Origin: Basidiobolus meristosporus CBS 931.73
Lineage: Eukaryota > Fungi > Basidiobolomycota
Length of the DNA stretch: 36,332 nt
Direction of reading: 5' to 3'
NCBI GenBank assembly: GCA_002104905.1
Contig: MCFE01000786.1
Coordinates: forward strand, 1-36,332
Of the stretch, positions 303 to 27,762 are shown in pieces. The notes under the pieces were generated by a model that made no database searches, was not told the origin of the DNA, and saw only the letters and a list, made by a program, of their open reading frames with translations. Positions within the stretch are counted from its first letter, which is position 1. Every line of letters begins with the position of its first letter. The translations under genes and the position numbers were made by a program.

Positions 303-3300
303 ATGTTAAGTCTGGACACCATGACAATTGCAAAAACCCCACCACCTTGTATAGTTTCCTTAGAAGCCTATCTCAACTGTCTGAATAATCCAGCACTACT
401 CATATCGCACATCACTACACACTCGACACCTCCGAAATTCAATATACTCTACGCTAATAGCTATTTTCTCACACTATGCGGCTTGAGAAATTTTACCACC
501 ATTTCTAGCCAACTAAACGAACATATTGTCCCTGCAGACCAGGAAAAATTTCTCACCTGGCTTCAAAGAGTCAGCAAGAACGAAATATCTGATGAAGAAA
601 CCTGCACAATTCACATATATGGTGAGCACCCTGACTCGGAATCTACCGCGCAAAAAGGAAGGCCAAAGTGTAGATTGTCAAGTGAAAAAGTGAAGCTTGA
701 GTGGAGTGGAGTTAGTGTTAATAGCGAAGCAATAGTTCTGACAGGAGCAGTTATCGTCGAAGCAAAAAAGGGTAACGTGGCAGATGCGGAGGACTGTTTG
801 GTGGAAAAATCAGTTCAAGCTGAACATACAGAAGTCATAGAGCGTAAAGATACGAACTTGAAAGATGATTGGCAGAGCGTAGTAGAGGTAGGTTCAATGA
901 TACGTAACCTGTAATAGGCAAGCAGGTAAACATAGTAAACAACATCTAACATCCAAATCGTATTAAGCTAGGAAATCTTTTCACCGGTGGCGGTGCTACG
1001 GGAGAGCTCTTTCGTAACTATGATTGGAGCAATTCATTTCTAGGGCCAGTCACCAAATGGCCTCAATCCCTACTCACAGCCGTGTCATTATGCATAGCAT
1101 CTCCACTTCCTATGGCAGTATGGTGGGGACCACAGTTGACGATAATCTAGTAAGTTAAAGATAGCTAATTATATTTTTGGTGTTTGTCCAACTATTGCCA
1201 GCACCATTGTCGAGGATGTTTGGACTAATAAGGAGATCAATGTAGCAATGACGGATATTGTGGTGTCGCAGGACAAAAGCATCCAGCCATGTTTGGGAAA
1301 GAAGGACCAGTACATTGGGAGGAACTTTGGGAGGGCATAAGGCCGTTTGCAGAGCAAGCAATGCAAGGAAAAAACTCATACGTGGAAGACGATTTGTTGC
1401 TCATGACGAGGAGAGGGTATCTCGAGGAGACGTACATCACGGTAAGTGGGTGTGATGAGGTGAATCGAGGAGAGGGAGGGAGGGAAGAGACACAATACTA
1501 ACTAAATTGGTACTAGTGGTCATTTATACCGATAAGGCAGGAGGATGGCACGGTGGGTGGACTGCTCAATCCGTACATTGAAGTGACAGAGAGAATACTA
1601 GCCGAACGGAGGTTGAAAACACTCAGAGATATAAATGCTGAAACTAACGTTGCCAAAGATGCCAGGGAAGTATTTGAATCCATTGGAAAAGTACTTTCAG
1701 AGAATCCGTATGACATACCATTTGCGGCACTTTATACACACATCCTCCTAGACGATGAAGAAATGGAGGAATCCTATGACTCTGAGAGCAATGTCACGGC
1801 TAAATCGGAGTCCTTACATTTATCACAAACAGTTGGAATGCCAGAAGAACATCCATCAATGTTCCCTATCATTAGACTTACACCATCGTTCGAAGCCAAT
1901 GTCCTTCAAGACGCTGTGAGGCTTGCATACGAAAGCAAGCAAAGCGTGAAGATCGAGCTGGGTGAATGGTTTGGAGAAGTACCCATTCGCGGATGGGACA
2001 CCGCAACGACACAAGCAATAGTAAGTCCGATCATGGGGAACAACAAGGACGGAGTGATGGGAGTTCTAGTAATCGGACTCAATGCAAGACGAGAGTATGA
2101 TGAAAGTTATGAGACATTTGTCGAGCTCGTTTGTCGGCAAACAGGATCAGCCATCATCAACATCAGTGCATACGAGGAAGAGGTTCGGAGATTCAAGGAG
2201 TTGGCGGCAATTGACCGAGCCAAGACAGCATTCTTCAGCTCAGTTTCACACGAGCTCCGCACACCGCTGACCTTGATCTTGGGGCCAGTGAAAGACATGC
2301 TGTTGGAAAAAGACCTTGCCTCAGAGACGAGGTCAAAGATTGTCTATATGCATCGCAATGCGGAACGGTTGTTGCGACTAGTGAATCTACTGTTGGACTT
2401 CAGCAAAATCGAAGCAGGAAAGATGCAGGTAAGTGCCAGATATGTTCTTGAGACGGGAGTGAGGTGAATGAATGAGTGAGTACTAACGTGGAAACATGAT
2501 CATGTTGTAGGCCACTTTTCAAGAAACAAATCTGGGCAAGTTCACGGCCGACCTGGCGAGCATGTTCCGATCGGCGATCGAGAAAGGAGGAGTCCGGTTT
2601 GAGGTGGACTGTGAGAGGATGGAAAGGAATGTATGGGTTGACAGGGACATGTGGGAGAAGATCGTGTTCAACCTGATTGGGAATGCATTCAAATTCACGA
2701 TGAAAGGGTCGATCACAGTGAAGCTGGCATCATCTGAGGATGACAGGCAAGCGATACTGTCGGTGGCAGACACTGGGGATGGGATCCCGAGCCATGAGAT
2801 TATGCGAGTGTTTGAGCGGTTCCACCGAGTCGAAGGACGAAAAGGGCGCAGCCACGAAGGGACAGGAATTGGGCTTGCACTGACCCAAGAGCTCGCCAAG
2901 TTGCACGGTGGTACAGTTGGAGTGACCAGTGAGTTTGGTAAAGGAAGCATATTTACTGTGCATATTCCACTCGGGTGTGGCCATCTGCCCAGTGATCGGC
3001 TGGTCGAGCCTTGTCCTGCTGGAGAGGAAGAGCCACAGATGGAGCATCATTGTACATATGGACGATCATTTGTTGAAGAAGCGCGACACTGGCTTCCGAT
3101 GTCAGAGGAGGAGACGACCGAATATTACTCGAACACATCAAGTACCGATTCAAATGCCGGTGGTTCAGTCAATTTTCCAGTTGTCAGCCGTGGTTGTCGC
3201 GTACTACTTGCAGACGACAATGTGGACATGAGAAAGTACATCAAGAGCATCCTGGAGAAATGGTGGAGAGTGACCGAGGCAGAGGATGGAGAGCAAGCAT

Positions 3301-6139
3301 ACCAGATGGCAATTGCAGACCCACCAGATCTGATTGTGAGTGATGTGATGATGCCTAACCTCGATGGATATGGTCTGTTGAAGCTACTTCGAACTCAGCC
3401 TCTCACCAAATTCGTCCCAGTGATTCTGCTGAGTGCACAAGCTGGTGAGGAGGCACGAGTGGATGGGCTGAGTGCCGGGGCGGATGACTACCTTGTGAAG
3501 CCATTCAGTGCGAAGGAGCTGGTTGCCAGAGTGCATACCCATCTGGAACTCGGGAAGCTGAGGGTTGAACTAGAGAGGATGGTGAAAGATCGAACCCAAG
3601 AATTAATTGCGAGTGAAATGAGATATAAAATGCTTGCGAAGTTAAGTCCTGTTGGAATATTTAGACTAGATATCAAAGTAAGTACCCCGCCATATTATAT
3701 ATCTTGAATGATTACGTGCCAATTTTACTTCACCGACATTAATGAATTGTTATGTAAATAGGGCAATGTAACGTACACGAATGACAAGTGGTGGTGTATA
3801 TCAGGTCATAACCGAGATGTGGATCCCACTGCTGCCAACTTTTTGACGAGTGTTCATCCTGAAGATCGTGATCGAGCTGATAAATTATGGAAGGAAGCAA
3901 TTGAGCAATTCACACATTCAATAGTTGAATTTCGATGGAAACGCGCCAATGGAGAATCGCGTTGGTGTGTTTGTAAGTAGTTATTCAAATTGAACCTTAC
4001 TTCAACAATGACTCAATGCCATCTGCGTCTCTACTTAGGCGAAATGATAGTACAATACGATGAGGACATGAAACCATGCGGCTTTGTTGGTGCCATCACT
4101 GACCTAACCGAACGAAAGTTACTGGAACAAGAGCGTCTTTCTGCTGTCAGACTTGCAGAACAGCAACAACGGCATCGTGCCGAAGAAGCTGAGGAGGTGA
4201 AGAGGCAGCAGGAGCTGTATATTGATATGACCTGCCATGAGCTGCGCAATCCTCTCAACGGAATCTACCACAGTGCAGACCTGCTGCACGAATCACTGGA
4301 GAAAGTGCAGAAAGAGGTGCGTAAGGAAAGCATCGCGAAAGTGGCCAACTGGCTGGAGAAAGAGATTGAGGATGATCTGGATGTTGTTGATACGATCACC
4401 CTCTGTGCTCAGCACCAAAAGGTAGGGTTCTATTCTATGGATGAGGATGGCGACGATAGCACCAGAATGAGCACAAGAATGTGAGACCGGAGGTTAACAT
4501 GATTTCATTTGTATGAATAGAAAATTGCAGATGATGTGCTACACATGTCGAAGATCAACATGAATCTGCTGGTACTGTCGAAGACCAAGCTACGTCCTGT
4601 TGAGGTTGTCACGAATGTGATTCGAATGTTCGAGACCGAGGTGCGCCTTAAGAGGATAGATCTGCGGCTCGTTGTAGCTGAAGGGTACACTCACATGAAG
4701 GTGGACTGGGTGAAGGGGGATCCCACACGGTTCACACAGATATTGTAAGTAGACATATACAGTATCATTTGACGATTGGCTAATGTATTTCGCTTCGACT
4801 TATGCCAGAATCAATTTCCTTACAAATGCAATTCGGTTCACAGAGAAGGTGCCCTTTAGACAAGTAACAGTAACACTCGATGCATCTGATCGAGTACCCT
4901 CACAGTCAGCTATTGAGTTATCAAATAATGAAAAGGTGCTACAATTAACCGGAACGGCAACAAATGCCAGCGATGGGTGCACTACCAGCCCATTGGGTAA
5001 AGATCTAGATGAATGCGAATCTCCAACTTTGGGATTAGACGCAATCGACTTTGGAATGGAATGTGTTGGAGGCGAAGGTGCAGATAGACCAACTGCTGCA
5101 CACCCCGATGCAGTATACATTGCAGTTGCTATCAAGGACAGTGGGGTTGGAATGACCATTGAAGAGCAAGCTAACCTATTCCAACGATTTGCCCAAGCCA
5201 ACCCTCGAACATATGCCGAGTTTGGAGGAAGTGGACTAGGACTGTTCATCAGCAAGCGATTGGTGGAGCTGCATGATGGCAAGATCACTGTGAGATCGAA
5301 GAAAGGTGATGGTACAACATTCACTTTCTACCTGAAGTGCGATCGGGTGGATGTCATTGGCGAAGGAATATCTGAAGGACATGTTATAGCGGAAAACGAC
5401 CCTAATCTATTGGAATTCATGTATACTGAACCTCACAAACCTCCAGTGGATAATCTATCCACTTCACAGGGCAATAAGGATAAGCCAAAGAAGAGGCCCA
5501 TTGTTACCAAAACAAAAACGAAATTTTCGAAGGTCAAGGATGAGAACCTAGTCTATGCGAAGGAGAAGCTAGAATCCTCTGTGTGGGTCCAATCGGATGA
5601 TATGCAAAATTGTCCAACACCTGGGTTAGAACGTAATCGTAAAGCCACTTCAAGTGAATTACCCACCACACTAAGCAACAGTGTACTAGTTGTGGAGGAC
5701 AATCTTATCAACCAACGAGTGCTCAAACGACAACTGGAGCTAGCGGGATTCTCGGTTGGGGTGGCCAAACATGGCGCTGAAGCGTTAGAGGTGATGAGTA
5801 AGGTCAGCTATCACCTGATCCTAATGGTAAGTCATCCCCTTGAGAAGTGTGAGGCTATTTCATGTAATCAACGATGATTGACCGGAATGGGTTCGATTTG
5901 TGTAGGATCTGGAGATGCCAGTGATGGGTGGACTGGAATGCACGCAGCGGATCCGAGAGCTTGAGAAATCCGCGGGAGAGCAGCAAGTTCCGATTATCGG
6001 AGTGTCAGGGAATGCGCGGGAAGAGTACAGGCGCCTTGCCCTAGCATCAGGAATGACGGACTACGTTATCAAGCCATACGACAAGCAAGCGCTCATCAGC
6101 CTCATCAACTCATTCTTAGCTAGCATAGTGCCTATCTGA
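303..6139 (+). CDS. Dual hybrid histidine kinase, copy 1 (~1703 aa, 10 exons: 303-887, 968-1149, 1246-1441, 1517-2428, 2511-3677, 3762-3972, 4039-4421, 4521-4744, 4809-5826, 5906-6139)
   Basis: GT..AG introns with CTAAC-like branch sites; exons sum to 5112 nt in frame. HK1 H-box FFSSVSHELRTP, N-box NLIGNAFKFT, DTGDG, GTGIGL; REC1 LLADDN/VSDVMMP/KPF; HK2 H-box DMTCHELRNP, NFLTNAIRFT, DSGVG, GGSGLGL; REC2 VVEDN/LMDLEMP/KPY. Two transmitters plus two receivers is the architecture known for fungal dual HKs such as Cryptococcus Tco2. Confidence 0.92.
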
Positions 6140-7494
6140 ATTGCATCTGCATTGTACCATGTATATAGCATATACTAGATTGTCAAATATTTATGGCTCA
6201 ACCCATGAATAAACAAGGAGATGAATTATTGGAATGCCCTGTTCACTAGCAAGATCTCATACATTCGGGATTACAACCCAAGATTTCATGAAAATCATCA
6301 GGTCATTTGCACAATTCTGCAACAAATCAATCGAAATCAAAATATGTCTTCAATCAGTTGGTTTTTTACCCGCAAACAAATCATAAACCTGTAAATCATT
6401 CAGATGATGAGTAGATTGAGATTGCTATATAAATTTTTCAGCAACCACTATTAACATGGTGAATCAATGCACCCCTATCATACGCATTTTCTCCATGTGG
6501 GCGTTTGCACATTCTACATCCTTACTGAGCGAGTTTCCCTCTTGGAGTTCAGTGTCGATTATTCAATCCTGAATCATCTCAGTGACAATGTTGTTTAGTA
6601 CTGGTTCAAACATTGTTTACCAGACATGCGGTATTTGTCTAGGGTATCAAGTGTTTCCAAGAACCAGCAAACGAACCGAATGGCATGTTGAGTACTGGTA
6701 TATTAGCCTGCTTCCTTGCTTCAGTGCATGCCGACCTGGTAAAATGGGGACTTGATTCGAGATTGGTGTACCAAATAGGAAAGCAGAGTTCTTGGGGTTC
6801 AACAAGTGTAAGGTGACATGAGAATATAGATGGACTCTGCGGAGGATGAGTACTGGACAGCAAGTATGTGTTAGTGCATGCCGTTACGATAAGCAATTGA
6901 ACGAAACATATGCCTCGAAAGGTCCTTCTTTCGCGCAGCAGGCTGTTCATTTCACTGAGATATTATAAACCAGTTTGATGTTACATGAGTTTCGAGTTTA
7001 CTGTCTCAGTGAACTAGTTCAGTATTTCCCAATTAGGATCACTAATATACATCGAAATATGGTTGCCGATTGATATCACTCTCAAGCTAGAATTATTGAA
7101 ACGAATATAAAATTCCTATCATCATCGGCGTTTCTATCCATCACATATGATCTACCAAATCTACGGTAGCCCCATGAATCTTGCCCAGAAGGAATATTTG
7201 TGGTTCACTCTCTAAATTGAAGTTGGGATCAGTTACTACTCCAGGGAATACCCGCAGAAACATCCATATTGAGTAATGAGGTTATTATCTAATCAACTGA
7301 ATTGGGTACTCCCTCCATATAAGCTTCATTCATCAGCGTCTCTACAGTATTGGTTTCATCCGTGTCAGAGTACAATTTCGTCGCTATTTCCATTAGTTCT
7401 CTCAAAGAGTTGAGTAGTATATAAATTCATAGAAGACCAGTATTAATACCTATCAATATATTATCTATATTCCCGTCCAGAACTCTGCAACACG

Positions 7495-10400
7495 ATGCTC
7501 AGCCTGGACATATTGACGATTCCCGCAACCCCTCTACCTTGCGCTATGACACTTGAAGAATATCTCAACTGCCTGAACAGGCCTGCACTGCTTCTGAGCT
7601 ATACCCCCTCAGACACTACAGTCCTGCCTCCCGCTGTTACCTTACTCTACGCTAATGACTACTTTTTGACTTTGTGTGGTGCAAAAAATGTGACGATGTT
7701 ATCCGACCGACTAAAAGTACTCCTGACCCCCACAGATCAAACACATTTCCTTACCTGGCTTGAGAGAGTGAACTCCAACGAACTCTCTGACAGAGACCCC
7801 TGCAGCATACACATATCCGGAAAGCCACCGGACCTTACGCCTGACACAAAAAATACCAAACAGAAGAGCGAAAAGATACAGGCGGAGGTGAGGCTCGAGT
7901 GGACTGGGGTCAACATTCGTAACGAAGCGATTGTCTTGACGGCAACGGTTGTTGCTAAGAGTGGACAGGAAGTCACAAAAACAGCGGAGGAGGTTGGTTT
8001 GAGTAAAAAATTGACGGAACGAAACCCTACCGAAATCAGTGCGGATAAGGAGGATGATTGGCAGAGAGTACCACAGGTAGGTTCAGCATTTCAATCATGG
8101 GTTGCTCGCCATGAGTGAGTTGATATGTGTGAGGTAGACCGCTAACCATCAACCTTTCATGAAGCTGACAAGCACTCTCTCAGGTGGAGGAGCCATGGGG
8201 GAGATGCTACGTAACTACGATTGGAGCAATTCATCGTTGGGTCCGGTCACCAAGTGGCCCCAGTCCCTGCTCTCAGCAGTGTCGTTGTGCATGGCATCCA
8301 CACTTCCTATGGCGGTGTGGTGGGGACCACGATTCACGATCATCTAGTAAGTAGAGGTCAACCAAACACATTGGTGTGGTGGTTGCTGACCATGCGTGGC
8401 CGTCACCACCACCACTAGTGATCAGAGATGGACTAACAGCAAGATTTCGTGTAGCAATGATGGGTACTGTGGTGCAGCAGGCCAAAAACACCCCGCGATG
8501 TTTGGGCAAGAAGGCCCGGTGCACTGGGAAGAGCTTTGGGAGGGCATAGGACCATCGGCAGAACTAGCAATGCAGGGGACAAACTCATACGTGGAGGATG
8601 ATTTGCTACTTATGACCAGGCGAGGGTATCTCGAGGAGACGTACATTACGGTGAGTAAGGGTGATGAGCCGAATGAGTGGGAGAGAGGGAGAGATAATTT
8701 TCAAGTGGTACTAAACGAAGTGAATCTAGTGGTCATACATACCGATCAGACAGGAGGACGGCACAGTGGGGGGATTCCTCAACCCATACATTGAGGTGAC
8801 CGAGCGAATCCTTGCCGAGCGTAGGCTCAAGACACTCCGAGATTTCAGTTCTGAGATCAACCTGGCCAAAGACACCAGGGAGGTGTTCGACTCGATAGGA
8901 AAAGTACTTTCGGAGAACCCGTACGACATCCCATTCGCCGCACTCTACACACACATGACCCCAAATAAGGATGTGATTGAAGAGTCTTACGACGACGTGA
9001 GCAGCAGCACCAACACCAAGTCGGACTCATTATACCTCATTCAGACGGTGGGAATACCCGAGGATCATCCCTCCGTATTCTCTACCATTAGACTTTCACC
9101 ATCATTCCAAGCCAGTACTGTTCAGGAAGCAATGAGACTTGCATACGAAAGCAAGAAAATAGTGAAAATCAAGTTGGGCGAATGGTTTGGGGAGGTGCCA
9201 ATTCGCGGATGGGACACCGCGGCCAGGGAATTGATAGCAAGTCCAATCATGGGGAACAACAAGGATGGAGTGCTAGGGGTGTTGGTGATGGGACTCAATG
9301 CCAGATCTGAGTACGATGAGAACTACGAGACGTTTGTTGATCTCGTTTGTCGGCAAACAGGATCAGCCATCATCAACATCAGTGCATACGAGGAAGAGGT
9401 TCGGAGATTCAAGGAGTTGGCGGCGATTGACCGAGCCAAGACAGCATTCTTCAGCTCAGTTTCACACGAGCTCCGCACACCACTAACCTTGATCTTGGGG
9501 CCAGTGAAAGACATGCTGTCGGAGAAGGACCTGGTGCCGGAGACGAAGACCAAGCTCACGTACATGAACCGGAATGCAGAGCGGCTACTGCGACTAGTGA
9601 ATCTACTGTTGGACTTCAGCAAAATCGAAGCAGGAAGGATGCAGGTAAGTGACAGATCTGACTATAAAGCTGTAGTCAGGTGGATGAATGGATTGTGCTT
9701 GAGAGAGTGAGTGAGTAAATGTGTACTAACGTGGAAACATGATCATGTTGTAGGCCACTTTCCAAGAAACAAATCTAGGCAAGTTCACGGCCGACCTGGC
9801 GAGCATGTTCCGATCGGCGATCGAGAAAGGAGGAGTCCAGTTTGAGGTGGACTGTGAGAGGATGGAAAGGAATGTATGGGTTGACAGGGACATGTGGGAG
9901 AAGATCGTGTTCAACCTGATTGGGAATGCATTCAAATTCACGATGAAAGGGTCGATCACAGTGAAGCTGGCATCATCTGAGGATGACAGGCAAGCGATAC
10001 TGTCGGTGGCAGACACTGGGGATGGGATCCCGAGCCATGAGATTATGCGAGTGTTTGAGCGGTTCCACCGAGTCGAAGGACGAAAAGGACGCAGCCACGA
10101 AGGGACAGGAATTGGGCTTGCACTGACCCAAGAGCTCGCCAAGTTGCACGGTGGTACAGTTGGAGTGACCAGTGAGTTTGGTAAAGGAAGGTGAGTGAGA
10201 TTTAGCACTTTGGACGAGTGGCTCGTGGGATCCAAAGTGAGATGACTGTTGGAGAGGAGTAGCTAACAAGGAGCTGATTCATATTTCTTTAGTACGTTTA
10301 CAGTCCACATTCCACTTGGATGCAGCCATTTATCCCAGGACCGGTTGATTGAAACCTCAGAAGTAAATGACAATGAGGTTGAAGTGGACATGCCAAGTCG

Positions 10401-13400
10401 GTATGGACGATCATTTGTTGAAGAAGCGCGAAACTGGCTTCCGTCATCAGATGAGGACAGCACCGAGTATCACTCGAACACATCAAGTACTGATTCAAAT
10501 GCCGGTGGGTCAATCACCTTCCCAGTCGTCAGCCGTGGTTGTCGCGTACTACTCGCAGACGACAATGTGGACATGAGAAAGTACATCAAGAGCATCCTGG
10601 AGAAATGGTGGAGAGTGACCGAGGCAGAGGATGGAGAGCAAGCATACCAGATGGCAATTGCAGACCCACCAGATCTGATTGTGAGTGATGTGATGATGCC
10701 TAACCTCGATGGATATGGTCTGTTGAAGCTACTTCGAACTCAGCCTCTCACCAAATTCGTCCCGTTGATATTGCTGAGTGCACAAGCTGGTGAGGAGGCA
10801 CGAGTGGATGGGCTGAGTGCCGGGGCGGATGACTACCTTGTGAAGCCATTCAGTGCGAAGGAGCTGGTTGCCAGAGTGCATACCCATCTGGAACTCGGGA
10901 AGCTGAGGGTTGAACTAGAGAGGATGGTGAAGGAAAGAACCAAGGAGCTGATTGCCAGTGAAGCCAGATACAAGACTCTCACTAAGCTTAGTCCTGTCGG
11001 GATATTCAGAACAGATTTGGAGGTAAGTGTTTTGCCAGAAGTAAGGAACTGGGGCTTGCTCCATCTTGTTTCCACAACGTGTGCTTTGATATTTGAGCCT
11101 AGTACTAACTTCTGGATTGAACATTGCAGGGGAATGTAACGTACACAAATGACAAGTGGTGGAGCATCTCGGGTCACAATCGGGAGATGGATCCATCAGC
11201 TGCTGACTTCATGTCAAGCATTCACCCGGACGATTTTGAGTTTGTTAGCCGAACATGGAAAGAGTCGCAACGAGCTCAGACAGGCTCTGCTGTTGAGTTC
11301 AGATGGAAGTGGGCCAATGGTGATACCCACTGGTGCTTTAGTATGTGTTGATCTGGTTGTTTACTACATATGAAGCATACTTTATTAACTTGTTTACATT
11401 TTCCAGGTGAAATGATTGTTGAATACGACAATGAGATGAGGCCATGCGGTTTCGTTGGTGCACTTACGGATCTCACTGAGCGCAAGATGCTGGAACAAGA
11501 GCGCCTTTCTGCTGTCAGACTTGCAGAACAGCAACAACGGCATCGTGCCGAAGAAGCTGAGGAGGTGAAGAGGCAGCAGGAGCTGTATATTGATATGACC
11601 TGCCATGAGCTGCGCAATCCTCTCAACGGAATCTACCACAGTGCAGACCTGCTGCACGAATCACTGGAGAAAGTGCAGAAAGAGGTGCGTAAGGAAAGCA
11701 TCGCGAAAGTGGCCAACTGGCTGGAGAAAGAGATTGAGGATGATCTGGATGTTGTTGATACGATCACCCTCTGTGCTCAGCACCAAAAGGTAAGGGCATG
11801 TTATATGGACAGAAATGGTGATTGGGTCGAGAGTAGCTTCGATCCGCCTTGGTATTCAAGATGAGTTACTTGATTGTTATTCACCTTGCATTTAACAGAA
11901 AATTGCAGATGATGTACTACACATGTCGAAGATCAACATGAAACTGCTGGTACTGTCGAAGACCAAGCTACGTCCTGTTGAGGTTGTCACGAATGTGATT
12001 CGAATGTTCGAGACCGAGGTGCGTCTGAAGGAGATAGATCTGCGGCTCATTGTAGCTGAAGGGTACACTCGCTTGAAGGTGGACTGGGTGAAGGGGGATC
12101 CCACACGGTTCACACAGATATTGTTAGTATTTAAAAATTAAGGATCAAATTCATAGATTCTAATCCTTCTTTTTGACCTTTAGAATCAACTTTATTACGA
12201 ATGCGATTCGGTTCACGGAGAGGGTTCCATTTAGACAAGTGGTTGTCACACTCGATGCATCTGGTCGAGTACCCTCACAGCCAGTTATTGAGTCACCAGC
12301 TATGGAGACCGTGCGACAAACAGGTGATACGATTAGTGAGGACGATGTGGGCTGCAAGATCAACCATTCAACCAAGATTAAAGCTGAACGTGAATTACCA
12401 ATGGTTGGGTCCGATTCTGGGGATTGTGGGAAGGCGTATTTTGGAGCTGAAGGAAACAGACCAGCAGTCGCACACCCTGATGCTTTATACATTGCAGTCG
12501 CCATCAAGGATAGTGGAGTTGGGATGACAACTGATGAACAGGCGAACCTATTCAAGCGATTCGCCCAAGCCACCCCTCGAACATACGCCGAGTTTGGAGG
12601 AAGTGGACTAGGACTGTTCATCAGCAAGCGATTGGTGGAGCTGCATGATGGCAAGATCACTGTGAGATCGAAGAAAGGTGATGGTACAACATTCACTTTC
12701 TACCTGAAGTGTGATCGAGTGGATGATATCGAAGAAGGAAAAGCTGAAGCATGCGCAGGGGTCGGGAGTAGTCCTAATGCAGCGGAGATGATGTACACAG
12801 AGCCACACAAGCCACCGGTAAATAACCTACCGACCACTGAAGAGCAGAAGAGCAAGCCAAAGAAGAAGGCAACCGCACTCAAAGCAAAGAAGAAAGGCTC
12901 GAAGGCTCGAGATGAGAAGCTGGTCTGCACGAAGGAGAGACTGGATTCTTCGGTTTGGAGACGATCCAATGATATGGAATCGAACCCCCGAACTGGCTTG
13001 GAGAGCAAATGCCATACCAAATCTCAGGGTATATCGGTCGGAACCAGCTACAGCATTCTAGTTGTGGAGGACAATCTTATCAACCAACGAGTGCTCAAAC
13101 GACAACTGGAGCTAGCGGGATTCTCGGTTGGGGTGGCCAAACATGGTGCTGAAGCGCTAGAGGTGATGAGTAAGGTCAGCTATCACCTGATCCTAATGGT
13201 AAGTCATCCCCTTGAGAAGTGTGAGGCTATTTCATGTAATCAACGATGATTGACCGGAATGGGTTCGATTTGTGTAGGATCTGGAGATGCCAGTGATGGG
13301 TGGACTGGAATGCACGCAGCGGATCCGAGAGCTTGAGAAATCCGCGGGAGAGCAGCAAGTTCCGATTATCGGAGTGTCAGGGAATGCGCGGGAAGAGTAC

Positions 13401-15738: not shown

Positions 15739-15785
<47 letters not shown>

Positions 15786-18700
15786 AAGTGATGCTAACCA
15801 AACCGATTTTAGTGGTCGTACATACCGGTCAGACAGGAGGATGGCACAGTAGGCGGATTCCTGAATCCTTATATTGAGGTGACGGAGCGAATCCTTGCTG
15901 AGCGGAGACTCAAAACGCTCAAAGACATCAATGCAGACGCGGCAGTGGCAAAGGATACAAGAGAGATGCTCAGTTCGATAGGGACAGTCCTGTCTGAGAA
16001 TCCATATGACATACCATTTGCGGCCCTCTACACACACATTCTACCAGATGACGAGGAGATGGAAGAATCATACGACAACGTGAGCAGCACTACAACAAAG
16101 TCGGACACTCTACACCTGACGCAGACAATAGGAATGCCAGAAGAACATCCATCAATGTTCCCAATCATTAGACTTGCACCATCGTTCCATGCCAATATCT
16201 TGCAGGACGCAGTGAGACTTGCGTATGAAAGCAAGCAAAGCGTGAAGATCGAGCTGGGTGAATGGTTTGGGGAGGTGCCAATTCGTGGATGGGATGCCGC
16301 CGCTACCCAAGCAGTAGTAAGTCCGATCACAGGGAGCAACAAGGATGGAGTTCTAGGAGTGATAGTGATGGGAATCAATGCCAGACGCGAATATGATGAG
16401 AATTACGAGACGTTTGTTGATCTCGTTTGTCGGCAAACAGGATCAGCCATCATCAACATCAGTGCATACGAGGAAGAGGTTCGGAGATTCAAGGAGTTGG
16501 CGGCAATTGACCGAGCCAAGACAGCATTCTTCAGCTCAGTTTCACACGAGCTCCGCACACCACTAACCTTGATCTTGGGACCAGTCAAGGATTTACTATT
16601 AGAGAGAGATCTAGCAAAAGAAACCAGAACCAAGCTCACGTATATGAACCGGAATGCAGAGCGGCTACTGCGACTAGTGAATCTACTGTTGGACTTCAGC
16701 AAAATCGAAGCAGGAAAGATGCAGGTAAGTGCCAGATATGTTCTTGAGACGGGAGTGAGGTGAATGAATGAGTGAGTACTAACGTGGAAACATGATCATG
16801 TTGTAGGCCACTTTCCAAGAAACAAATCTGGGCAAGTTCACGGCCGACCTGGCGAGCATGTTCCGATCAGCGATTGAGAAAGGAGGAGTCCGGTTTGAGG
16901 TGGACTGTGAGAGGATGGAAAGGAATGTATGGGTTGACAGGGACATGTGGGAGAAGATCGTGTTCAACCTGATTGGGAATGCATTCAAATTCACGATGAA
17001 AGGGTCGATCACAGTGAAGCTGGCATCATCTGAGGATGACAGGCAAGCGATACTGTCGGTGGCAGACACTGGGGATGGGATCCCGAGCCATGAGATTATG
17101 CGAGTGTTTGAGCGGTTCCACCGAGTCGAAGGACGAAAAGGGCGCAGCCACGAAGGGACAGGAATTGGGCTTGCACTGACCCAAGAGCTCGCCAAGTTGC
17201 ACGGTGGTACAGTTGGAGTGACCAGTGAGTTTGGTAAAGGAAGGTGAGTGAGATTCAAATCTTTGGATATACGTCACGGTGCGATGGCTGATTTCGGAAA
17301 GTAACTAACACAGATTATACCAATGCTCATTAGTGTATTCACTGTACACATCCCGTTCGGATGTAGCCATCTTCCAAAGGATCGATTGATTACAGCCTCA
17401 ATGGAGCAGGTGAATGAGGTTGAGGTTGAGGTTGACATGCCCAGCAGATATGGCCGATCAATTGTGGATGAGGCTCGTCACTGGCTACCACAGTCGGATG
17501 AGGACAGCACCGAGTATCACTCGAACACATCAAGTACCGATTCAAATGCCGGTGGGTCAATCACCTTCCCAGTCGTCAGCCGTGGTTGTCGCGTACTACT
17601 CGCAGACGACAATGTGGACATGAGAAAGTACATCAAGAGCATCCTGGAGAAATGGTGGAGAGTGACCGAGGCAGAGGATGGAGAGCAAGCATACCAGATG
17701 GCAATTGCAGACCCACCAGATCTGATTGTGAGTGATGTGATGATGCCTAACCTCGATGGATATGGTCTGTTGAAGCTACTTCGAACTCAGCCTCTCACCA
17801 AATTCGTCCCAGTGATTCTGCTGAGTGCACAAGCTGGTGAGGAGGCACGAGTGGATGGGCTGAGTGCCGGGGCGGATGACTACCTTGTGAAGCCATTCAG
17901 TGCGAAGGAGCTGGTTGCCAGAGTGCATACCCATCTGGAACTCGGGAAGCTGAGGGTTGAACTAGAGAGGATGGTGAAGGAAAGAACCAAGGAGCTGATT
18001 GCCAGTGAAGCCAGATACAAGACTCTCACTAAGCTTAGTCCTGTCGGGATATTCAGAACAGATTTGGAGGTAAGTGTTTTGCCAGAAGTAAGGAACTGGG
18101 GCTTGCCCCATCTTGTTTCCACAACGTGTGCTTTGATATTTGAGCCTAGTACTAACTTCTGGATTGAACATTGCAGGGGAATGTAACGTACACAAATGAC
18201 AAGTGGTGGAGCATCTCGGGTCACAATCGGGAGATGGATCCATCAGCTGTTGATTTCCTGTCCAGCGTGCATCCTGATGATCGTGAACATGTTGATCGAA
18301 TTTGGAAAGAGGCACAACGTGCTCAAGTAAGTTCAGCTGTTGAGTTCAGATGGAAGTGGGCAAACGGAGAAACTCGCTGGTGCTTCAGTACGTGAATGCC
18401 TATTTATATTCCCCGAGTAGGTTATATTAACAGTATGCTTACCCAAATTGTATGTTGCTAGACGAAATGATTTTGCAACATGATAATGAAATGAAGCCAT
18501 GTGGTTTTGTTGGAGCACTAACTGATCTTACCGAACGGAAGCGGTTGGAACAAGAGCGCCTTTCTGCTGTCAGACTTGCAGAACAGCAACAACGGCATCG
18601 TGCCGAAGAAGCTGAGGAGGTGAAGAGGCAGCAGGAGCTGTATATTGATATGACCTGCCATGAGCTGCGCAATCCTCTCAACGGAATCTACCACAGTGCA

Positions 18701-20558
18701 GACCTGCTGCACGAATCACTGGAGAAAGTGCAGAAAGAGGTGCGTAAGGAAAGCATCGCGAAAGTGGCCAACTGGCTGGAGAAAGAGATTGAGGATGATC
18801 TGGATGTTGTTGATACGATCACCCTCTGTGCTCAGCACCAAAAGGTAGGGTTCTATTCTATGGATGAGGATGGCGACGATAGCACCAGAATGAGTACAAG
18901 TATGTGAGACCGGAGGTTAACATGATTTCATTTGTATGAATAGAAAATTGCAGATGATGTGCTACACATGTCGAAGATCAACATGAATCTGCTGGTACTG
19001 TCGAAGACCAAGCTACGTCCTGTTGAGGTTGTCACGAATGTGATTCGAATGTTTGAGACCGAGGTGCGTCTGAAGGAGATAGATTTGAAGTTAGTTTTGG
19101 CTGAAGGGTACACTCGCATGAAGGTGGACTGGGTGAAGGGGGATCCCACACGGTTCACACAGATATTGTAAGTAGACATATACAGTATCATATGACAAAG
19201 GGTTAACGTATTTTACTTTGGTTTAATCAGAATCAACTTTATGACGAACGCGATTCGGTTCACGGAGAGGGTTCCATTTAGACAAGTGGTTGTCACACTC
19301 GATGCATCTGACCGGGTACCCTCACAGCCAGTTATTGAATCGCCAGCTATGGAGACCGTGCGACAAACAGGTGATACGATTAGTGAGGACGATGTGGGCT
19401 GCAAGATCAACCATTCAACCAAGATTAAAGCTGAACGTGAATTACCAATGGTTGGGTCCGATTCTGGGGATGGTGGGAAGGCGTATTTTGGAGCTGAAGG
19501 AAACAGACCAGCAGTCGCACACCCTGATGCTTTATACATTGCAGTCGCCATCAAGGATAGTGGAGTTGGGATGACAACTGATGAACAGGCGAACCTATTC
19601 AAGCGATTCGCCCAAGCCACCCCTCGAACATACGCCGAGTTTGGAGGAAGTGGACTAGGACTGTTCATCAGCAAGCGATTGGTGGAGCTGCATGATGGCA
19701 AGATCACTGTGAGATCGAAGAAAGGTGATGGTACAACATTCACTTTCTACCTGAAGTGTGATCGAGTGGATGATATCGAAGAAGGAAAAGCTGAAGGATG
19801 CGTAGGGGTCGGGAGTAGTCCTAATGCAGCGGAGATGATGTACACAGAGCCACACAAGCCACCGGTAAATAACCTACCGACCACTGAAGAGCAGAAGAGC
19901 AAGCCAAAGAAGAAGGCAACCGCACTCAAAGCAAAGAAGAAAGGCTCGAAGGCTCGAGATGAGAAGCTGGTCTGCACGAAGGAGAGACTGGATTCTTCGG
20001 TTTGGAGACGATCCAATGATATGGAATCGAACCCCCGAACTGGCTTGGAGAGCAAATGCCATACCAAATCTCAGGGTATATCGGTCGGAACCAGCTACAG
20101 CATTCTAGTTGTGGAGGACAATCTTATCAACCAACGAGTGCTCAAACGACAACTGGAGCTAGCGGGATTCTCGGTTGGGGTGGCCAAACATGGTGCTGAA
20201 GCGTTAGAGGTGATGAGTAAGGTCAGCTATCACCTGATCCTAATGGTAAGTCATCCCCTTGAGAAGTGTGAGGCTATTTCATGTAATCAACGATGATTGA
20301 CCGGAATGGGTTCGATTTGTGTAGGATCTGGAGATGCCAGTGATGGGTGGACTGGAATGCACGCAGCGGATCCGAGAGCTTGAGAAATCCGCGGGAGAGC
20401 AGCAAGTTCCGATTATCGGAGTGTCAGGGAATGCGCGGGAAGAGTACAGGCGCCTTGCCCTAGCATCAGGAATGACGGACTACGTTATCAAGCCATACGA
20501 CAAGCAAGCGCTCATCAGCCTCATCAACTCATTCTTAGCTAGCATAGTGCCTATCTGA
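14543..20558 (+). CDS. Dual hybrid histidine kinase, copy 3 (~1705 aa, 11 exons: 14543-15130, 15211-15392, 15494-15689, 15813-16724, 16807-17243, 17334-18069, 18177-18387, 18462-18844, 18944-19167, 19231-20245, 20325-20558)
   Basis: Same catalytic motifs; exons sum to 5118 nt in frame; all splice sites GT-AG. Confidence 0.92.
15742..15782. repeat. Intronic microsatellite (GA)19(GT)1 in HK copy 3
   Basis: Read directly, preceded by a G9 run. Confidence 0.95.
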
Positions 20559-21663
20559 ATTGCATCTGCATTGTACCATGTATATAGCCTATACTAGATT
20601 GTCAACTTTTGGATATGAAATAAAAAAACATCTGTAGGTATCAAGATCTTGTAAACTTATTACGACTCAAGATCGCAGGAACATTTCTAGGTGTCTTGCT
20701 GAAACTATTCTGACACTTGATTTAAATGGTTTACTGGTTGAAATGGTGATATGAACCAACCTCATTTTACCATCCAACGAAATGTGAATTTAATATACTG
20801 CCAAGTACAGTGTATCATAGATGATGTAATCATTGCCAAATTCTATTCCAAGCTCTGGGAGATTCCCATGACGTAATTCGCGATACAGGTACTGCTCCTT
20901 TCAAGCAAATGGGAAACTCGGGTTAAATAGGCTAATCCACCAAGACAGCGTTTTCCATGCCCCTGCTAACATATATGTCTATTCCGATGCCGTCTGTGAT
21001 TACGAATTAGATATCAAAGTAGCTGTATAGAACCGTTGGTGTTTTGAGCAGGTGTAATGTGGAGATTTCGGTAGTTGAGCTGGGCTTTTTGGCTCATTCG
21101 TCTGTAAAATCAAATTGCTAATTCTTGGAGAATAAGGGGTAAGGTGGATGGTCTAGTAGGAGCAACAGACCATGTGGGGCTTGGGTTTTCGGATTGGTGA
21201 TTCATCTGAATCAAAATTGCATGTTGATTGATAATGCTGCGATGTGCTGCATAGGACATCAGATTTACCCGATGAACCAGTTTATTACTCTTTTAAGCAG
21301 GCTAACAAATTATCATTGTAGCTGCTGTCTCATCTCATCAAGAATGATCTTTAAATCTACGATCGCAGTGCCGGCCTCGTCCAAATTTGGTATTGGTTCA
21401 AATTGACAATAGGTTATCTATAACTCGAGGAGAAATTCACCAAAAGCATTCATGTTCGACATCAAGATTGTTGTCTAATGCACTTTAATAGATCCTCCTT
21501 ACCCATATCCAACTCACCTGCTCCTTTCACAATTTAAATATTGTCAACACCTCTGTACTTTCTCTGGTCCTCTAAACGACACTCGTATACCACTTATTAA
21601 TAGTATTCGATAGTAATTGCATCAATCCCTCCATCAAAACCTCCGTCCGTAACTCTGCAAAAA

Positions 21664-24600
21664 ATGCTCAGTTTGGACATAATGCCAGCTCCAACACACC
21701 CCTCACCTTACGCACTTACTTTGGAGGACTACCTGAGCTGCCTAAGTAGGCCTGCACTACTCCTGAAATACACGCCTCCCAATACTACAACTTTATCTCC
21801 TGCTGTATCCATACTATATGCCAATGACTATTTCCTCAGCATATGTGGCACAAAGAACGTGTCGACTATATCCAACCGGCTGAAGCAATTGATTGCTCCA
21901 AAAGATGAGGCTCCATTTCTCAACTGGCTTCAAAAAGTGAGCGTAAACGAAGTTTCCGATAAAGACACCTGTACTATTCGCATTTGCACCCAGCAACTTC
22001 ACCCAGCATCTTACTCAAACGGCAGCCGAAAAAGCGAAATGGCCAGAGCAGAAGTGGAGCTCAGATGGAGCGGAGTCAGCATAAGGAACGAAGCAATAGT
22101 CCTCACGGGGATTGTTGTTACTAGGGAGAGCCCAAGTAGCATAGCAAGTGAGCTGGAAAATACCTCAAGTGAAGAATCGACCGAAGCAGAACACACGGAA
22201 ATCATCGAAAGCGAGGTTGAGCTGGATGATTGGCAAAGCATACCCCAGGTAAGTTCCGTGATAAGAAACTAGTAATGATTAGGCGGTCAGGCGTAGGGTA
22301 GATGACTAATCCTCGAGTTTTGATCAAGCTCGCAACCATGCTATCGGGTGGAGGCGTTATGGGGGAGATGCTACGTAACTACGATTGGAGCAGCTCGCCG
22401 TTAGGGCCAGTCACCAAGTGGCCCCAGTCCCTGCTCACAGCGGTGTCACTGTGCATGGCATCCACACTTCCTATGGCAGTGTGGTGGGGACCGCAGTTCA
22501 CGATCATCTAGTAAGTAGAGGCCAACCATACGCATGAGTGCAGTGATTGTTGACCGAGCATGAGCAGGGCCGTTGTTGGAAGCAAACGAATTAACCATAT
22601 ATTTCGCGTAGCAATGATGCATACCATGGGGTTGCAGGACAAAAGCACCCAAGCATGTTTGGGAAGGAAGGGCCCGTCCACTGGGCAGAACTCTGGGATG
22701 ATGTAGGTCCGCTAGCGCATTTAGCAATGCAAGGAACAAACTCGTATGTCGAAGACAACCTGCTGTTCATGACCAGGAAAGGGTATCTCGAGGAGACATA
22801 TATCACGGTAAGCGAGTGTGATAAGATCTACTTTACGGGTGGCGGGGGGGAGCGGATGAGAGAGAGAGAGAGTGTGTGTGTGTGTGTGTGGACAAGTGAT
22901 GCTAACCAAACCGATTTTAGTGGTCGTACATACCGGTCAGACAGGAGGATGGCACAGTAGGCGGATTCCTGAATCCTTATATTGAGGTGACGGAGCGAAT
23001 CCTTGCTGAGCGGAGACTCAAAACGCTCAAAGACATCAATGCAGACGCGGCAGTGGCAAAGGATACAAGAGAGATGCTCAGTTCGATAGGGACAGTCCTG
23101 TCTGAGAATCCATATGACATACCATTTGCGGCCCTCTACACACACATTCTACCAGATGACGAGGAGATGGAAGAATCATACGACAACGTGAGCAGCACTA
23201 CAACAAAGTCGGACACTCTACACCTGACGCAGACAATAGGAATGCCAGAAGAACATCCATCAATGTTCCCAATCATTAGACTTGCACCATCGTTCCATGC
23301 CAATATCTTGCAGGACGCAGTGAGACTTGCGTATGAAAGCAAGCAAAGCGTGAAGATCGAGCTGGGTGAATGGTTTGGGGAGGTGCCAATTCGTGGATGG
23401 GATGCCGCCGCTACCCAAGCAGTGGTAAGTCCGATCACAGGGAGCAACAAGGATGGAGTTCTAGGAGTGATAGTGATGGGAATCAATGCCAGACGCGAAT
23501 ATGATGAGAATTATGAGACGTTTGTTGATCTCGTTTGTCGGCAAACAGGATCAGCCATCATCAACATCAGTGCATACGAGGAAGAGGTTCGGAGATTCAA
23601 GGAGTTGGCGGCAATTGACCGAGCCAAGACAGCATTCTTCAGCTCAGTTTCACACGAGCTCCGCACACCACTAACCTTGATCTTGGGGCCAGTGAAAGAC
23701 ATGCTGTTGGAAAAAGATCTAGCATCTGAGACCAAGATCAAACTCACATACATGCATCGCAATGCGGAACGGCTATTACGATTAGTAAATCTATTGATGG
23801 ACTTCAGCAAAATCGAAGCAGGAAGGATGCAGGTAAGTGACAGATCTGACTATAAAACTGTAGTCAGGTGGATGAATGGATTGTGCTTGAGAGAGTGAGT
23901 GAGTAAATGTGTACTAACGTGGAAACATGATCATGTTGTAGGCCACTTTCCAAGAAACAAATCTAGGCAAGTTCACGGCCGACCTGGCGAGCATGTTCCG
24001 ATCAGCGATTGAGAAAGGAGGAGTCCGGTTTGAGGTGGACTGTGAGAGGATGGAAAGGAATGTATGGGTTGACAGGGACATGTGGGAGAAGATCGTGTTC
24101 AACCTGATTGGGAATGCATTCAAATTCACGATGAAAGGGTCGATCACAGTGAAGCTGGCATCATCTGAGGATGACAGGCAAGCGATACTGTCGGTGGCAG
24201 ACACTGGGGATGGGATCCCGAGCCATGAGATTATGCGAGTGTTTGAGCGGTTCCACCGAGTCGAAGGACGAAAAGGGCGCAGCCACGAAGGGACAGGAAT
24301 TGGGCTTGCACTGACCCAAGAGCTCGCCAAGTTGCACGGTGGTACAGTTGGAGTGACCAGTGAGTTTGGTAAAGGAAGGTGAGTGAGATTCAAATCTTTG
24401 GATATACGTCACGGTGCGATGGCTGATTTCGGAAAGTAACTAACACAGATTATACCAATGCTCATTAGTGTATTCACTGTACACATCCCGTTCGGATGTA
24501 GCCATCTTCCAAAGGATCGATTGATTACAGCCTCAATGGAGCAGGTGAGTGAGGTTGAGGTTGAGGTTGACATGCCCAGCAGATATGGCCGATCAATTGT

Positions 24601-27515
24601 GGATGAGGCTCGTCACTGGCTACCACAGTCGGATGAGGACAGCACCGAGTATCACTCGAACACATCAAGTACCGATTCAAATGCTGGTGGGTCAATCACC
24701 TTCCCAGTCGTCAGCCGTGGTTGTCGCGTACTACTCGCAGACGACAATGTGGACATGAGAAAGTACATCAAGAGCATCCTGGAGAAATGGTGGAGAGTGA
24801 CCGAGGCAGAGGATGGAGAGCAAGCATACCAGATGGCAATTGCAGACCCACCAGATCTGATTGTGAGTGATGTGATGATGCCTAACCTCGATGGATATGG
24901 TCTGTTGAAGCTACTTCGAACTCAGCCTCTCACCAAATTCGTCCCAGTGATTCTGCTGAGTGCACAAGCTGGTGAAGATTCAAGGGTCGATGGCTTGAGC
25001 TCAGGGGCGGATGACTACCTTGTGAAGCCATTCAGTGCGAAGGAGCTGGTTGCCAGAGTGCATACCCATCTGGAACTCGGGAAGCTGAGGGTTGAACTAG
25101 AGAGGATGGTGAAGGAAAGAACCAAGGAGCTGATTGCCAGTGAAGCCAGATACAAGACTCTCACTAAACTTAGTCCGGTTGGTATATATAGAGCCAATTT
25201 GGAGGTATGTATTATGCCACTACTTCAGTGCAGTAATAGTATGAACATTTATAACTTTATGTTTATAGGGTCACATAACGTATACCAATGACAAGTGGTG
25301 GAGCATCTCGGGCCACGACCGAGAGGCCGATCCAACAGCCTCTAATTTCTTTTCCAGTGTACATTCTGCGGACCGTGAATACGTCGAACGGATGTGGAAC
25401 GAAGCCACTGAAACACAAACAAATTCAACCATTGAGTTCAGATGGAAGTGGGACAATGACGAACCGCACTGGTGTTTTAGTATGTGTTTATATTTGGTTG
25501 CTATATGATATAGGTAACTAATCTGCTCACATAATACTAGGTGAAATGATTGTTGAATATGATAATGAAATGAAGCCATGTGGTTTTGTTGGAGCACTAA
25601 CTGATCTTACCGAACGGAAGTTACTGGAGCAAGAGCGCCTTTCTGCTGTCAGACTTGCCGAACAGCAACAACGGCATCGTGCCGAAGAAGCTGAGGAGAT
25701 GAAGAGGCAGCAGGAGCTGTATATTGATATGACCTGCCATGAGCTGCGCAATCCTCTCAACGGAATCTACCACAGTGCAGACCTGCTGCACGAATCACTG
25801 GAGAAAGTGCAGAAAGAGGTGCGTAAGGAAAGCATCGCGAAAGTGGCCAACTGGCTGGAGAAAGAGATTGAGGATGATCTGGATGTTGTTGATACGATCA
25901 CCCTCTGTGCTCAGCACCAAAAGGTAGGGTTCTATTCTATGGATGAGGATGGCGACGATAGCACCAGAATGAGTACAAGTATGTGAGACCGGAGGTTAAC
26001 ATGATTTCATTTGTATGAATAGAAAATTGCAGATGATGTGCTACACATGTCGAAGATCAACATGAATCTGCTGGTACTGTCGAAGACCAAGCTACGTCCT
26101 GTTGAGGTTGTCACGAATGTGATTCGAATGTTCGAGACCGAGGTGCGTCTGAAGGAGATAGATTTGAAGTTAGTTTTGGCTGAAGGGTACACTCACATGA
26201 AGGTGGACTGGGTGAAGGGGGATCCCACACGGTTCACACAGATATTGTAAGTAGACATATACAGTATCATATGACAAAGGGTTAACGTATTTTACTTTGG
26301 TTTAATCAGAATCAACTTTATGACGAACGCGATTCGGTTCACGGAGAGAGTTCCATTTAGACAAGTGGTTGTCACACTCGATGCATCTGACCGAGTACCG
26401 TCACCAGGTGTTATTGGACCACCGAGTAATGTAGAATTACTCAAATCAAATCAAGTAGACAATTCGAATGCTCGGATACAAGCGAGTCCAGAAAACCATA
26501 GATCATTGGTGCTGGAACCGGATTTGAGTAGTGATGCTCTAGATATTGTCGGCGATGATGAAGCAGCTATCAGATCCGATGTCGTCTACATCGCAGTGGC
26601 TATTAAGGATAGTGGCGTTGGAATGACCACTGAAGAGCAGGCAAACCTCTTTCAACGGTTTGCCCAAGCAAATCCACGAACATATGCCGAATTTGGTGGA
26701 AGTGGATTGGGACTGTTCATCAGCAAGCGATTGGTCGAGCTTCATGATGGGGATATTACAGTGAGCTCCAAGAAGGGAGATGGCACAACATTCACCTTCT
26801 ATATCAAGTGCGAAAGAGTATACGAAGTCACCGGCAACTCTGCTAACAATGACCGTTCCGATTGCTATGATATAGGTGACATGAAACCATCAAGAACTAT
26901 CGAAAACATTTGCGCTGAAGCTTCTTTGGTTCGTTCTATTGAATCATGTAAACAATCCAACAAGGTCAAAGCCGCTGAGCTCAAGTCTCGCAAACTCAAG
27001 AAAAAAGTAACTGCTAGCAATATAGCGATCAAGCCGGATGCCGCCCCCAATTCCACTCTCAATGCACAGAGTAACGCATACCGTGTACTTGTGGTAGAGG
27101 ATAATCTTATCAATCAACGTGTACTTAAGCGCCAATTACAGTTGGAAGGTTATTGCGTGGGCGTAGCAAAGCACGGAGCTGAGGCACTAGAAGTGCTTAA
27201 GAAAGATAGCTACCACTTAATTCTGATGGTTCGTGCGAATTGAAAATGAAAGGTTGCGCAGTGCACTAACATTGGTCTCTTTTTTAGGACCTTGAAATGC
27301 CCGTAATGGGTGGCCTGGAATGTACCCGTCGGATTCGTGATATTGAAAAAACTAACAATGTACAGCAGATTCCAATTATTGGAGTTTCCGGCAATGCTAG
27401 GGATGAATACAGGCGTTTAGCAATAGACTCTGGAATGTCTGATTATATCATTAAGCCATATGAAAAGCAAGAACTAATTAACCTAGTTGCTAATAGTATT
27501 CAAATGAGTAAATAA
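21664..27515 (+). CDS. Dual hybrid histidine kinase, copy 4 (~1670 aa, 11 exons: 21664-22248, 22329-22510, 22612-22807, 22921-23832, 23942-24378, 24469-25204, 25269-25479, 25541-25923, 26023-26246, 26310-27228, 27288-27515)
   Basis: Same catalytic motifs; exons sum to 5013 nt in frame; the 3' third is more divergent and has a shorter linker. Confidence 0.92.
22858..22889. repeat. Intronic compound microsatellite (GA)7(GT)9 in HK copy 4
   Basis: Read directly; same intron position as the copy 3 repeat, preceded by a G7 run. Confidence 0.95.
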
Positions 27516-27727: not shown

Positions 27728-27762
27728 GCCATTTACGAATAACTCAACATTAATCAACTAAC

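Follow-up and report, generated by a model that had tools for sequence, protein, structure and literature searches.

A mosaic of shared tracts among four predicted dual hybrid histidine kinase genes in a subtelomeric array of Basidiobolus meristosporus

The window analysed here is the whole of contig MCFE01000786.1 of Basidiobolus meristosporus CBS 931.73 (36,332 nucleotides, nt), and it holds a tandem array of four predicted dual hybrid histidine kinase genes. Along the gene, the copies that match one another change again and again. The explanation we favour, with a probability of about 0.8, is that short stretches pass repeatedly between four old tandem paralogues through gene conversion of the interlocus (non-allelic), non-crossover kind. 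The process, gene conversion among tandem copies, is known; the gene family is new for it, and no new mechanism is involved.

The array and its patchwork of identity

Repeat finding and self-BLAST showed four direct repeats with a period of 7.05-7.37 kb, each unit carrying one gene on the + strand. Gene models combined the open frames with GT-AG sites and with evidence from aligning all four units, and were refined with transcript joints; copy 1 intron 1 (888-967) was placed by analogy with copy 3. The four genes are intron-bearing and have intact open reading frames (ORFs) of 1670-1705 amino acids (aa). Because TTAGGG repeats occupy the window end, 8.5 kb past the copy 4 stop codon, the array is subtelomeric.

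303-6139, + strand: copy 1; 1703 aa, 9 introns (intron 5 lacking); 39% of the gene in exact tracts of at least 50 nt
7495-13511, + strand: copy 2; 1702 aa, 10 introns; 53% of the gene in such tracts
14543-20558, + strand: copy 3; 1705 aa, 10 introns; 86% of the gene in such tracts
21664-27515, + strand: copy 4, telomere-proximal; 1670 aa, 10 introns; 61% of the gene in such tracts
15131-15210, 15393-15493, 15690-15812, 16725-16806 and 17244-17333, + strand: copy 3 introns 1-5, from spliced contigs of run X3 (see below)
18070-18176, 18388-18461, 18845-18943, 19168-19230 and 20246-20324, + strand: copy 3 introns 6-10, from the same contigs
6140-7494, 13512-14542, 20559-21663 and 27516-28719, no strand: spacers of 1.0-1.36 kb
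36061-36332, + strand: telomere repeats TTAGGG, read directly, at the window end

Pfam searches, made exon by exon, gave the domain order weak GAF, HisKA, HATPase_c, REC, PAS_3, HisKA, HATPase_c and REC. As Pfam and the continuous spliced ORFs place two HisKA-HATPase_c-REC modules in one ORF in all copies, we class the four genes, by domain content, as predicted dual hybrid histidine kinases. The H-box histidine and the receiver aspartate of both modules, read from the alignment, are kept in four of four copies, as are the motifs around them (SHELRTPL and CHELRNPL for the H-boxes, DVMMPNLDG and LILMDLEMPVMGG for the receivers). The closest protein matches of the kinase exons were partial proteins of Basidiobolus ranarum, at 79% and 72%.

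The four units were aligned with MAFFT, and a partition map was drawn from exact runs of at least 40 nt. Identity partners switch along the gene to give 47 segments; of the 15 ways in which four copies can be partitioned, 11 occur. Tracts are about 40-1,600 nt long, and for those of 40-1,174 nt differences amount to 0-0.4% inside and 20-50% in the flanks. Within tracts, copies 3 and 4 differ at 11 of 3,513 nt, copies 2 and 3 at 12 of 3,072 nt, and copies 1 and 3 at 6 of 2,312 nt (0.26-0.39%). The principal segments are listed below in copy 3 coordinates, with matching positions in other copies in brackets; pS and pN are synonymous and nonsynonymous divergence, and (13)(24) denotes a segment in which copy 1 pairs with copy 3 and copy 2 with copy 4.

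14543-14967, + strand: N-terminal exon 1, all copies distinct
14968-16579 (22086-23687), + strand: copies 3 and 4 alike over 1.6 kb, with 5 substitutions and 1 microsatellite indel; exons 1-4 and introns 1-3
16669-16830, + strand: (13)(24) segment at intron 4; copy 3 matches copy 1 (2373-2534), and copy 2 matches copy 4 (9610-9815 and 23798-24003)
16893-17241, + strand: HATPase1 exon block shared by all four, exact in copies 1, 3 and 4, with 1 difference in copy 2; pS 0.00-0.03
17602-17840, 17869-17978, 18621-18847 and 18989-19068, + strand: further blocks shared by all four (REC1, HisKA2)
18033-18249 (10986-11202), + strand: copies 2 and 3 alike; end of exon 6, intron 6, start of exon 7
18250-18479, + strand: all copies distinct; PAS_3 exon 7 and intron 7; pS 0.65-0.91, pN 0.15-0.32
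19343-20516 (12296-13469), + strand: copies 2 and 3 alike over 1174 nt apart from 4 differences; copy 1 also alike at 19634-19758 and from 20105 on
20517-20605 (6098-6186), + strand: copies 1 and 3 only; crosses the stop codon and reaches ~47 nt into the 3' flank

The introns and the two last exons change partners in the same fashion.

Introns 1-3: copies 3 and 4 at 100, 99 and 85%, the 85% reflecting a microsatellite length difference
Intron 4: copies 1 and 3 at 100% (2429-2510, 16725-16806); copies 2 and 4 at 99% (9645-9753, 23833-23941); 65-66% across the pairs
Intron 5: copies 3 and 4 at 100%; copy 2 at 66%; no such intron in copy 1
Intron 6: copies 2 and 3 at 99% (11023-11129, 18070-18176); 46-57% to the others
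Intron 7: no copies alike
Intron 8, inside HisKA2: copies 1, 3 and 4 at 98-100%; copy 2 at 59%
Intron 9: copies 3 and 4 at 100%; copy 1 at 80%
Intron 10: copies 1, 2 and 3 at 100%; copy 4 at 53%
Exon 10 (HATPase2): copies 2 and 3 at 99%
Exon 11 (REC2): copies 1, 2 and 3 alike

An earlier note, made from the sequence alone, had described much of this patchwork. It had copies 3 and 4 matching from 14936/22054 for ~1.6 kb, three introns included; the likeness does begin there, and exact identity runs from 14968/22086 to 16579/23687. Its series of pairings thereafter recurs in our alignment: copy 1 with 3 and copy 2 with 4 in the next intron (our intron 4), copies 3 and 4 in the following one (intron 5), copies 2 and 3 in the intron after REC1 (intron 6), copies 1, 3 and 4 with copy 2 unrelated in an intron it placed after HisKA2 (intron 8, which sits inside that domain), copies 2 and 3 in the HATPase2 exon (exon 10), and copies 1, 2 and 3 in the REC2 region (intron 10 and exon 11). 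The note's last tract, the stop codon plus ~45 nt of 3' untranslated region shared by copies 1 and 3 only, is also borne out, as past the stop codon these copies are exact for 30 nt and 98% identical over 47 nt. All positions that the note gives proved correct.

Taken by domain, homogenisation covers the last part of HisKA1 along with HATPase1, REC1 and HisKA2, and for copies 1-3 only it extends to REC2. Each copy has its own version of the first ~140 codons, of PAS_3 and intron 7, and of the HATPase2 insert and the linker to REC2. Copy 4 is unconverted over its 3' third, from about 26394, where it diverges strongly (pS 0.8-1.3).

A GA-rich microsatellite in intron 3 (15696-15779 in copy 3, 22814-22887 in copy 4) differs in length by 10 nt between these copies, which looks like slippage after conversion; the comparison with reads passed over 15732-15788 as repetitive.

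Topology switches, silent sites and the role of copy 3

The switching was compared with permuted data in three ways. The alignment holds 63 topology switches among 374 parsimony-informative columns, compared to 209±8.5 (minimum 178) in 10,000 shuffles of site order, and its pairwise homoplasy index (PHI) statistic was 0.396 compared to 0.561±0.004 in shuffles. The longest concordant runs (Sawyer-type) beat all 5,000 permutations for six of six pairs (p<=2e-4). Penalised segmentation gave, in order along the gene, (12)(34) at 147 of 153 informative sites, (13)(24) at 16 of 16, (12)(34) at 24 of 25, (14)(23) at 33 of 39, (12)(34) at 19 of 23 and (14)(23) at 59 of 60, with 80-100% of informative sites agreeing within segments. 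Chance is excluded, and the phylogenetic incongruence is significant and spatially clustered. As each of the three unrooted topologies is strongly supported somewhere, no single tree fits the four copies; the earlier claim that no single duplication tree would do so is upheld by both the four-way alignment and the segmentation.

To separate copying from constraint, we calculated pS and pN by window on a codon alignment of the spliced models. Inside tracts pS is 0.00-0.03. Outside them it is 0.6-0.9 (0.8-1.3 in the copy 4 3' third), even in conserved windows with pN of 0.03-0.13. The S9 peptidase gene next to the array has a pS of 0.73 against its syntenic B. ranarum orthologue. As the kinase copies reach this between-species level outside tracts, they are old, with saturated silent sites. 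Introns, too, are either 98-100% identical, for changing sets of partners, or 46-68% identical (80% for copy 1 intron 9). Because whole introns and all synonymous sites are identical, purifying selection cannot explain the identity, which, judged from this pattern, must come from copying. The earlier note had reached the same view from identical introns, and the tract pS values agree with it.

Sharing among the copies is far from even. Copies 3 and 4 only share about 1,725 alignment columns, copies 2 and 3 only about 900, and copies 1 and 3 only 158, compared to 86 for copies 2 and 4, 10 for copies 1 and 4, and none for copies 1 and 2. Triples follow suit, with 647 columns for copies 1, 2 and 3, 268 for copies 2, 3 and 4, 236 for copies 1, 3 and 4, and 20 for copies 1, 2 and 4, the sole triple without copy 3. 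Among identity classes of more than 20 columns, copy 3 belongs to every multi-copy one except the copy 2 and 4 half of (13)(24). We infer that the central copy 3 is the hub of exchange, and it may be a preferred donor; acceptor-only behaviour of copy 3 is incompatible with the blocks identical in all four copies. It also reads as a clearly chimeric gene, in which variable parts of copy-4 type and copy-2 type are combined. The earlier note had expected exchange to shuffle domain variants into new receptors. Copy 3 does mix copy-4 and copy-2 variable parts, and the idea of a new receptor is plausible for this chimera, but what exchange has done on balance is, for the most part, to homogenise the catalytic cores.

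The partition map shows that the genes have copied tracts from one another many times, and that these tracts take in introns as well as exons. We propose that conversion needs local homology and so persists where purifying selection keeps the copies alike, namely in HisKA1, HATPase1, REC1, HisKA2 and REC2 with their embedded introns. It would be blocked by divergence or indels in the N-terminal ~140 aa, the internal PAS domain, the HATPase2-REC2 linker, the spacers and the copy 4 3' third, since fast-diverging regions drop below the identity needed for exchange and thereby escape. The expected outcome is a homogenised catalytic chassis carrying copy-specific putative sensing parts, together with the chimeric copy 3.

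In a bolder version of this proposal, the array would serve permanently to diversify its own genes. Copy 3, as the subtelomeric master, would directionally donate and receive tracts and so re-assort two independent sensing modules, one N-terminal and the other the internal PAS, on the homogenised chassis, making new sensor combinations far above the point-mutation rate, perhaps with exchange among other subtelomeric dual-kinase arrays. We consider it a long shot.

Alternative explanations

Part of the mosaic could reflect ectopic exchange with dual-kinase genes elsewhere, for example at other subtelomeres, possibly alongside conversion within the array. Such exchange would explain unique segments such as copy 2 intron 8 and the copy 4 3' third; the telomere lies close to the array, and the copy 4 3' third falls outside a clade that unites copy 1 with the pair of copies 2 and 3. 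However, escape from conversion explains the unique segments equally well, and in B. ranarum a kinase 3' end also lies beside an S9 peptidase, so that the position of the copy 4 3' end looks old. A search for an external donor of copy 4 exon 10 gave a best match of 51% (B. ranarum), but was blind to full-length kinases and hence uninformative. We regard a contribution from outside the array as unlikely. To date the duplications and polarise the tracts, B. ranarum fragments were tried as outgroups: they lie at much the same distance from each of the four copies, the one fragment that covers the PAS block groups outside the four (91/81 support), and the 3' region is a polytomy.

Another possible source of the pattern is unequal crossing-over, or else a birth-and-death history in which whole units were duplicated recently and then diverged locally, with copy 3, for example, as a hybrid of copies 4 and 2 formed by a misaligned crossover. 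Unequal exchange does occur in tandem arrays, and copy 3 broadly resembles copy 4 towards the 5' end and copy 2 towards the 3' end. Crossover would, however, homogenise the adjoining spacers, and the four spacers share nothing: blastn at word size 7 detected no similarity among them except in the 47 nt that follow the stop codon in copies 1 and 3. Moreover, identity starts in the middle of exon 1 and stops within the last exon, all tracts being intragenic, and these bounds contradict crossover. At least five back-and-forth partner switches remain in a conservative segmentation, and (13)(24) patches and patches joining copies 1, 3 and 4 against copy 2 are interspersed. With spacers unalike, tracts intragenic and partners alternating, the data favour short-tract, non-crossover conversion over whole-unit exchange, and we hold the crossover account to be improbable. 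The earlier note had left the choice between gene conversion and unequal exchange open; non-crossover conversion stands, and unequal exchange does not, as tracts end inside the gene and spacers are unalike.

The loss of an intron from copy 1 bears on the route of exchange. Intron 5 is precisely missing there (2945-2949, junction between 2947 and 2948; compare copy 3, 17244-17333), with frame and codons kept, so that a continuous ORF (2562-3707) crosses the site. The tract of copy 1 that is identical in all four copies ends exactly at this junction, as expected if 90-102 nt of heterology stops heteroduplex extension. Conversion mediated by complementary DNA is an improbable main route, as only copy 1 intron 5 is missing. 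All other tracts retain identical introns, so DNA-to-DNA exchange would dominate; the loss itself may be a separate event mediated by a reverse transcript or by microhomology. We rejected a cassette system like those of VSG or var genes, with silent donors and one expressed copy: the four ORFs are intact, and transcript contigs carry copies 1, 2 and 4 too.

An error of assembly or polishing, in which the assembler switched between paralogues or mis-mapped reads polished similar regions to identity, was assessed by comparing Logan contigs of three runs (X1, X2 and X3) with copy 3. X3 is transcriptome-like, as its contigs skip exactly the ten modelled copy 3 introns; X1 and X2 are DNA, as introns are covered and spliced joints absent. 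Copy 3 is thus spliced as modelled, and loose ends in X3 that continue into copy 4 sequence at 14936, copy 2 at 16629 and copy 1 at 20105 make the other copies appear transcribed. An error could hide in the blocks identical in all four copies, which at 230-470 nt are longer than short reads, and contigs drop minority variants, so that hidden single-nucleotide polymorphisms (SNPs) could escape. Against this, junctions of copy-specific with shared sequence recur in contigs of the three runs at 14936, 16585, 16629, 17243, 17255, 17497 and 20105. These include the intronless junction of copy 1, found as a loose end at 17243 of an X1 contig (a DNA run), and copy 2 junction sequences, intron 5 among them, found as loose ends at 16629, 17255 and 17497. 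X1 and X2 also hold a contig unique to copy 3 (18251-18509). The few SNPs within tracts shared by copies 3 and 4 or by copies 2 and 3 are present as both letters in X1 and X2 (14967, 15225, 15450, 15696, 16316, 16406, 16830, 17414, 18107, 19472, 19797 and 19803); those at 15225, 15450, 15696, 16316 and 16406 belong to the 1.6 kb tract of copies 3 and 4. In addition, partner switches such as those from copies 3 and 4 to (13)(24), and from copies 3 and 4 to copies 2 and 3, take only 75-170 nt and are not separated by any long block identical in all copies, and relabelling copies across identical blocks cannot remove the tree conflict. We therefore judge an artefact very improbable.

Purifying selection on catalytic exons without any exchange, codon-level and splicing constraints included, can be dismissed: the blocks identical in all four copies do coincide with catalytic domains, but whole introns are identical between changing pairs, which refutes this reading, conserved exon windows outside tracts have pS of 0.6-0.85 at pN of 0.03-0.13, and identity partners change from block to block.

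Several points weigh against recurrent conversion within the array as we present it. It is read from a sequence pattern. The contigs reach at most 335 nt in this region, and their DNA may stem from the very culture that was assembled; being too short to phase the all-identical blocks of 230-470 nt, they leave the linkage of variable parts across those blocks to the assembly alone. A comparison with a second isolate came back empty, as runs X4-X6, which carry the same species label but come from another study, hold none of the sequence, and the data are those of one strain. Base composition does not decide the matter either. In copies 1, 3 and 4 the GC content at third codon positions is 0.55-0.59 in tracts and 0.41-0.44 outside them, whereas copy 2 has 0.56 inside and outside alike; with copy 2 differing and domain conservation as a confounder, the pattern does not establish GC-biased conversion.

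Of the 31-mers of the 5.7 kb gene, runs X4-X6 contain next to none, and this holds also for the blocks that are most conserved. Their isolate is either far more diverged than expected of a conspecific or lacks the array.

Known systems and the surroundings of the array

A fungal dual hybrid histidine kinase group was reportedly described by Lavin et al. in 2014. The genes of the array resemble this group in carrying HisKA-HATPase_c-REC twice per polypeptide, membership being assigned here by domain content alone. In Herivaux et al. 2017 (PMC5285503), the passages that deal with the group record it in early-diverging fungi, with Basidiobolus meristosporus CBS 931.73 among the genomes explored, and these passages mention no tandem arrays, subtelomeric location or conversion mosaics. 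Our literature search found no report of a conversion mosaic in histidine kinases or in Basidiobolus.

Three known systems invite comparison. In the HMA4 triplicate of Arabidopsis halleri, interlocus conversion has been modelled and yields a mosaic of homogenised and diverged segments (bioRxiv 10.1101/2025.10.29.685298). The likeness lies in tandem paralogues, conversion rates that vary along the gene, and a mosaic that includes effects of exon/intron structure. The HMA4 copies are recent duplicates, however, whereas the Basidiobolus array consists of four copies that are old and saturated at silent sites, and its patchwork is finer (47 segments, 11 partitions), has a hub copy, is subtelomeric and involves fungal dual hybrid histidine kinases. 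In plant NLR or receptor clusters, of which the RPP8 family is an example, paralogous sensor genes are described as exchanging sequence between genes, which gives chimeric alleles and patchwork similarity (bioRxiv 10.1101/694240; PMC6771003). There, exchange is argued to raise the diversity of recognition domains; in Basidiobolus the putative sensing parts escape and the catalytic cores are homogenised. Concerted evolution of the ribosomal DNA type is similar in that copies in one genome are more alike than their age predicts (PMC10462631). It homogenises whole units and their spacers, largely by unequal crossover (PMC10462631), whereas in Basidiobolus only intragenic patches are affected and spacers and promoters are unalike.

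For an expanded sensor-kinase family in an early-diverging fungus, this would mean that paralogues do not evolve independently and that full-length trees of them will mislead. Copy-specific function is best sought in the escaping regions, namely the N-terminus, the internal PAS and the linker. With saturated and near-identical sequence alternating dozens of times in 6 kb, the array is a clean natural example, useful for testing models of homology-dependent conversion and of 'escape from concerted evolution'.

Beyond copy 4 the window holds the following genes.

28720-30855, - strand: S9 peptidase (prolyl-oligopeptidase family), intact, just distal to the array
33625-34653 and 34584-36026, - strand: reverse-transcriptase ORFs, between the peptidase and the telomere

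The B. ranarum contig is syntenic at this end of the array, with the kinase 3' end followed by the S9 peptidase (locus L001, 5616-7679) at 86% aa identity. A direct duplication of ~600 bp (32489-33081 and 33526-34129) and the reverse-transcriptase ORFs adjoin the TTAGGG repeats, and the region as a whole (32489-36332) looks like a telomere-associated retroelement block.

Finally, for the HATPase1-REC1 exon of copy 1 (2511-3677), the next relatives after Basidiobolus were bacterial or metagenome hybrid kinases, with 45-54% identity over more than 90% of the length, which seemed high for a fungal kinase core.

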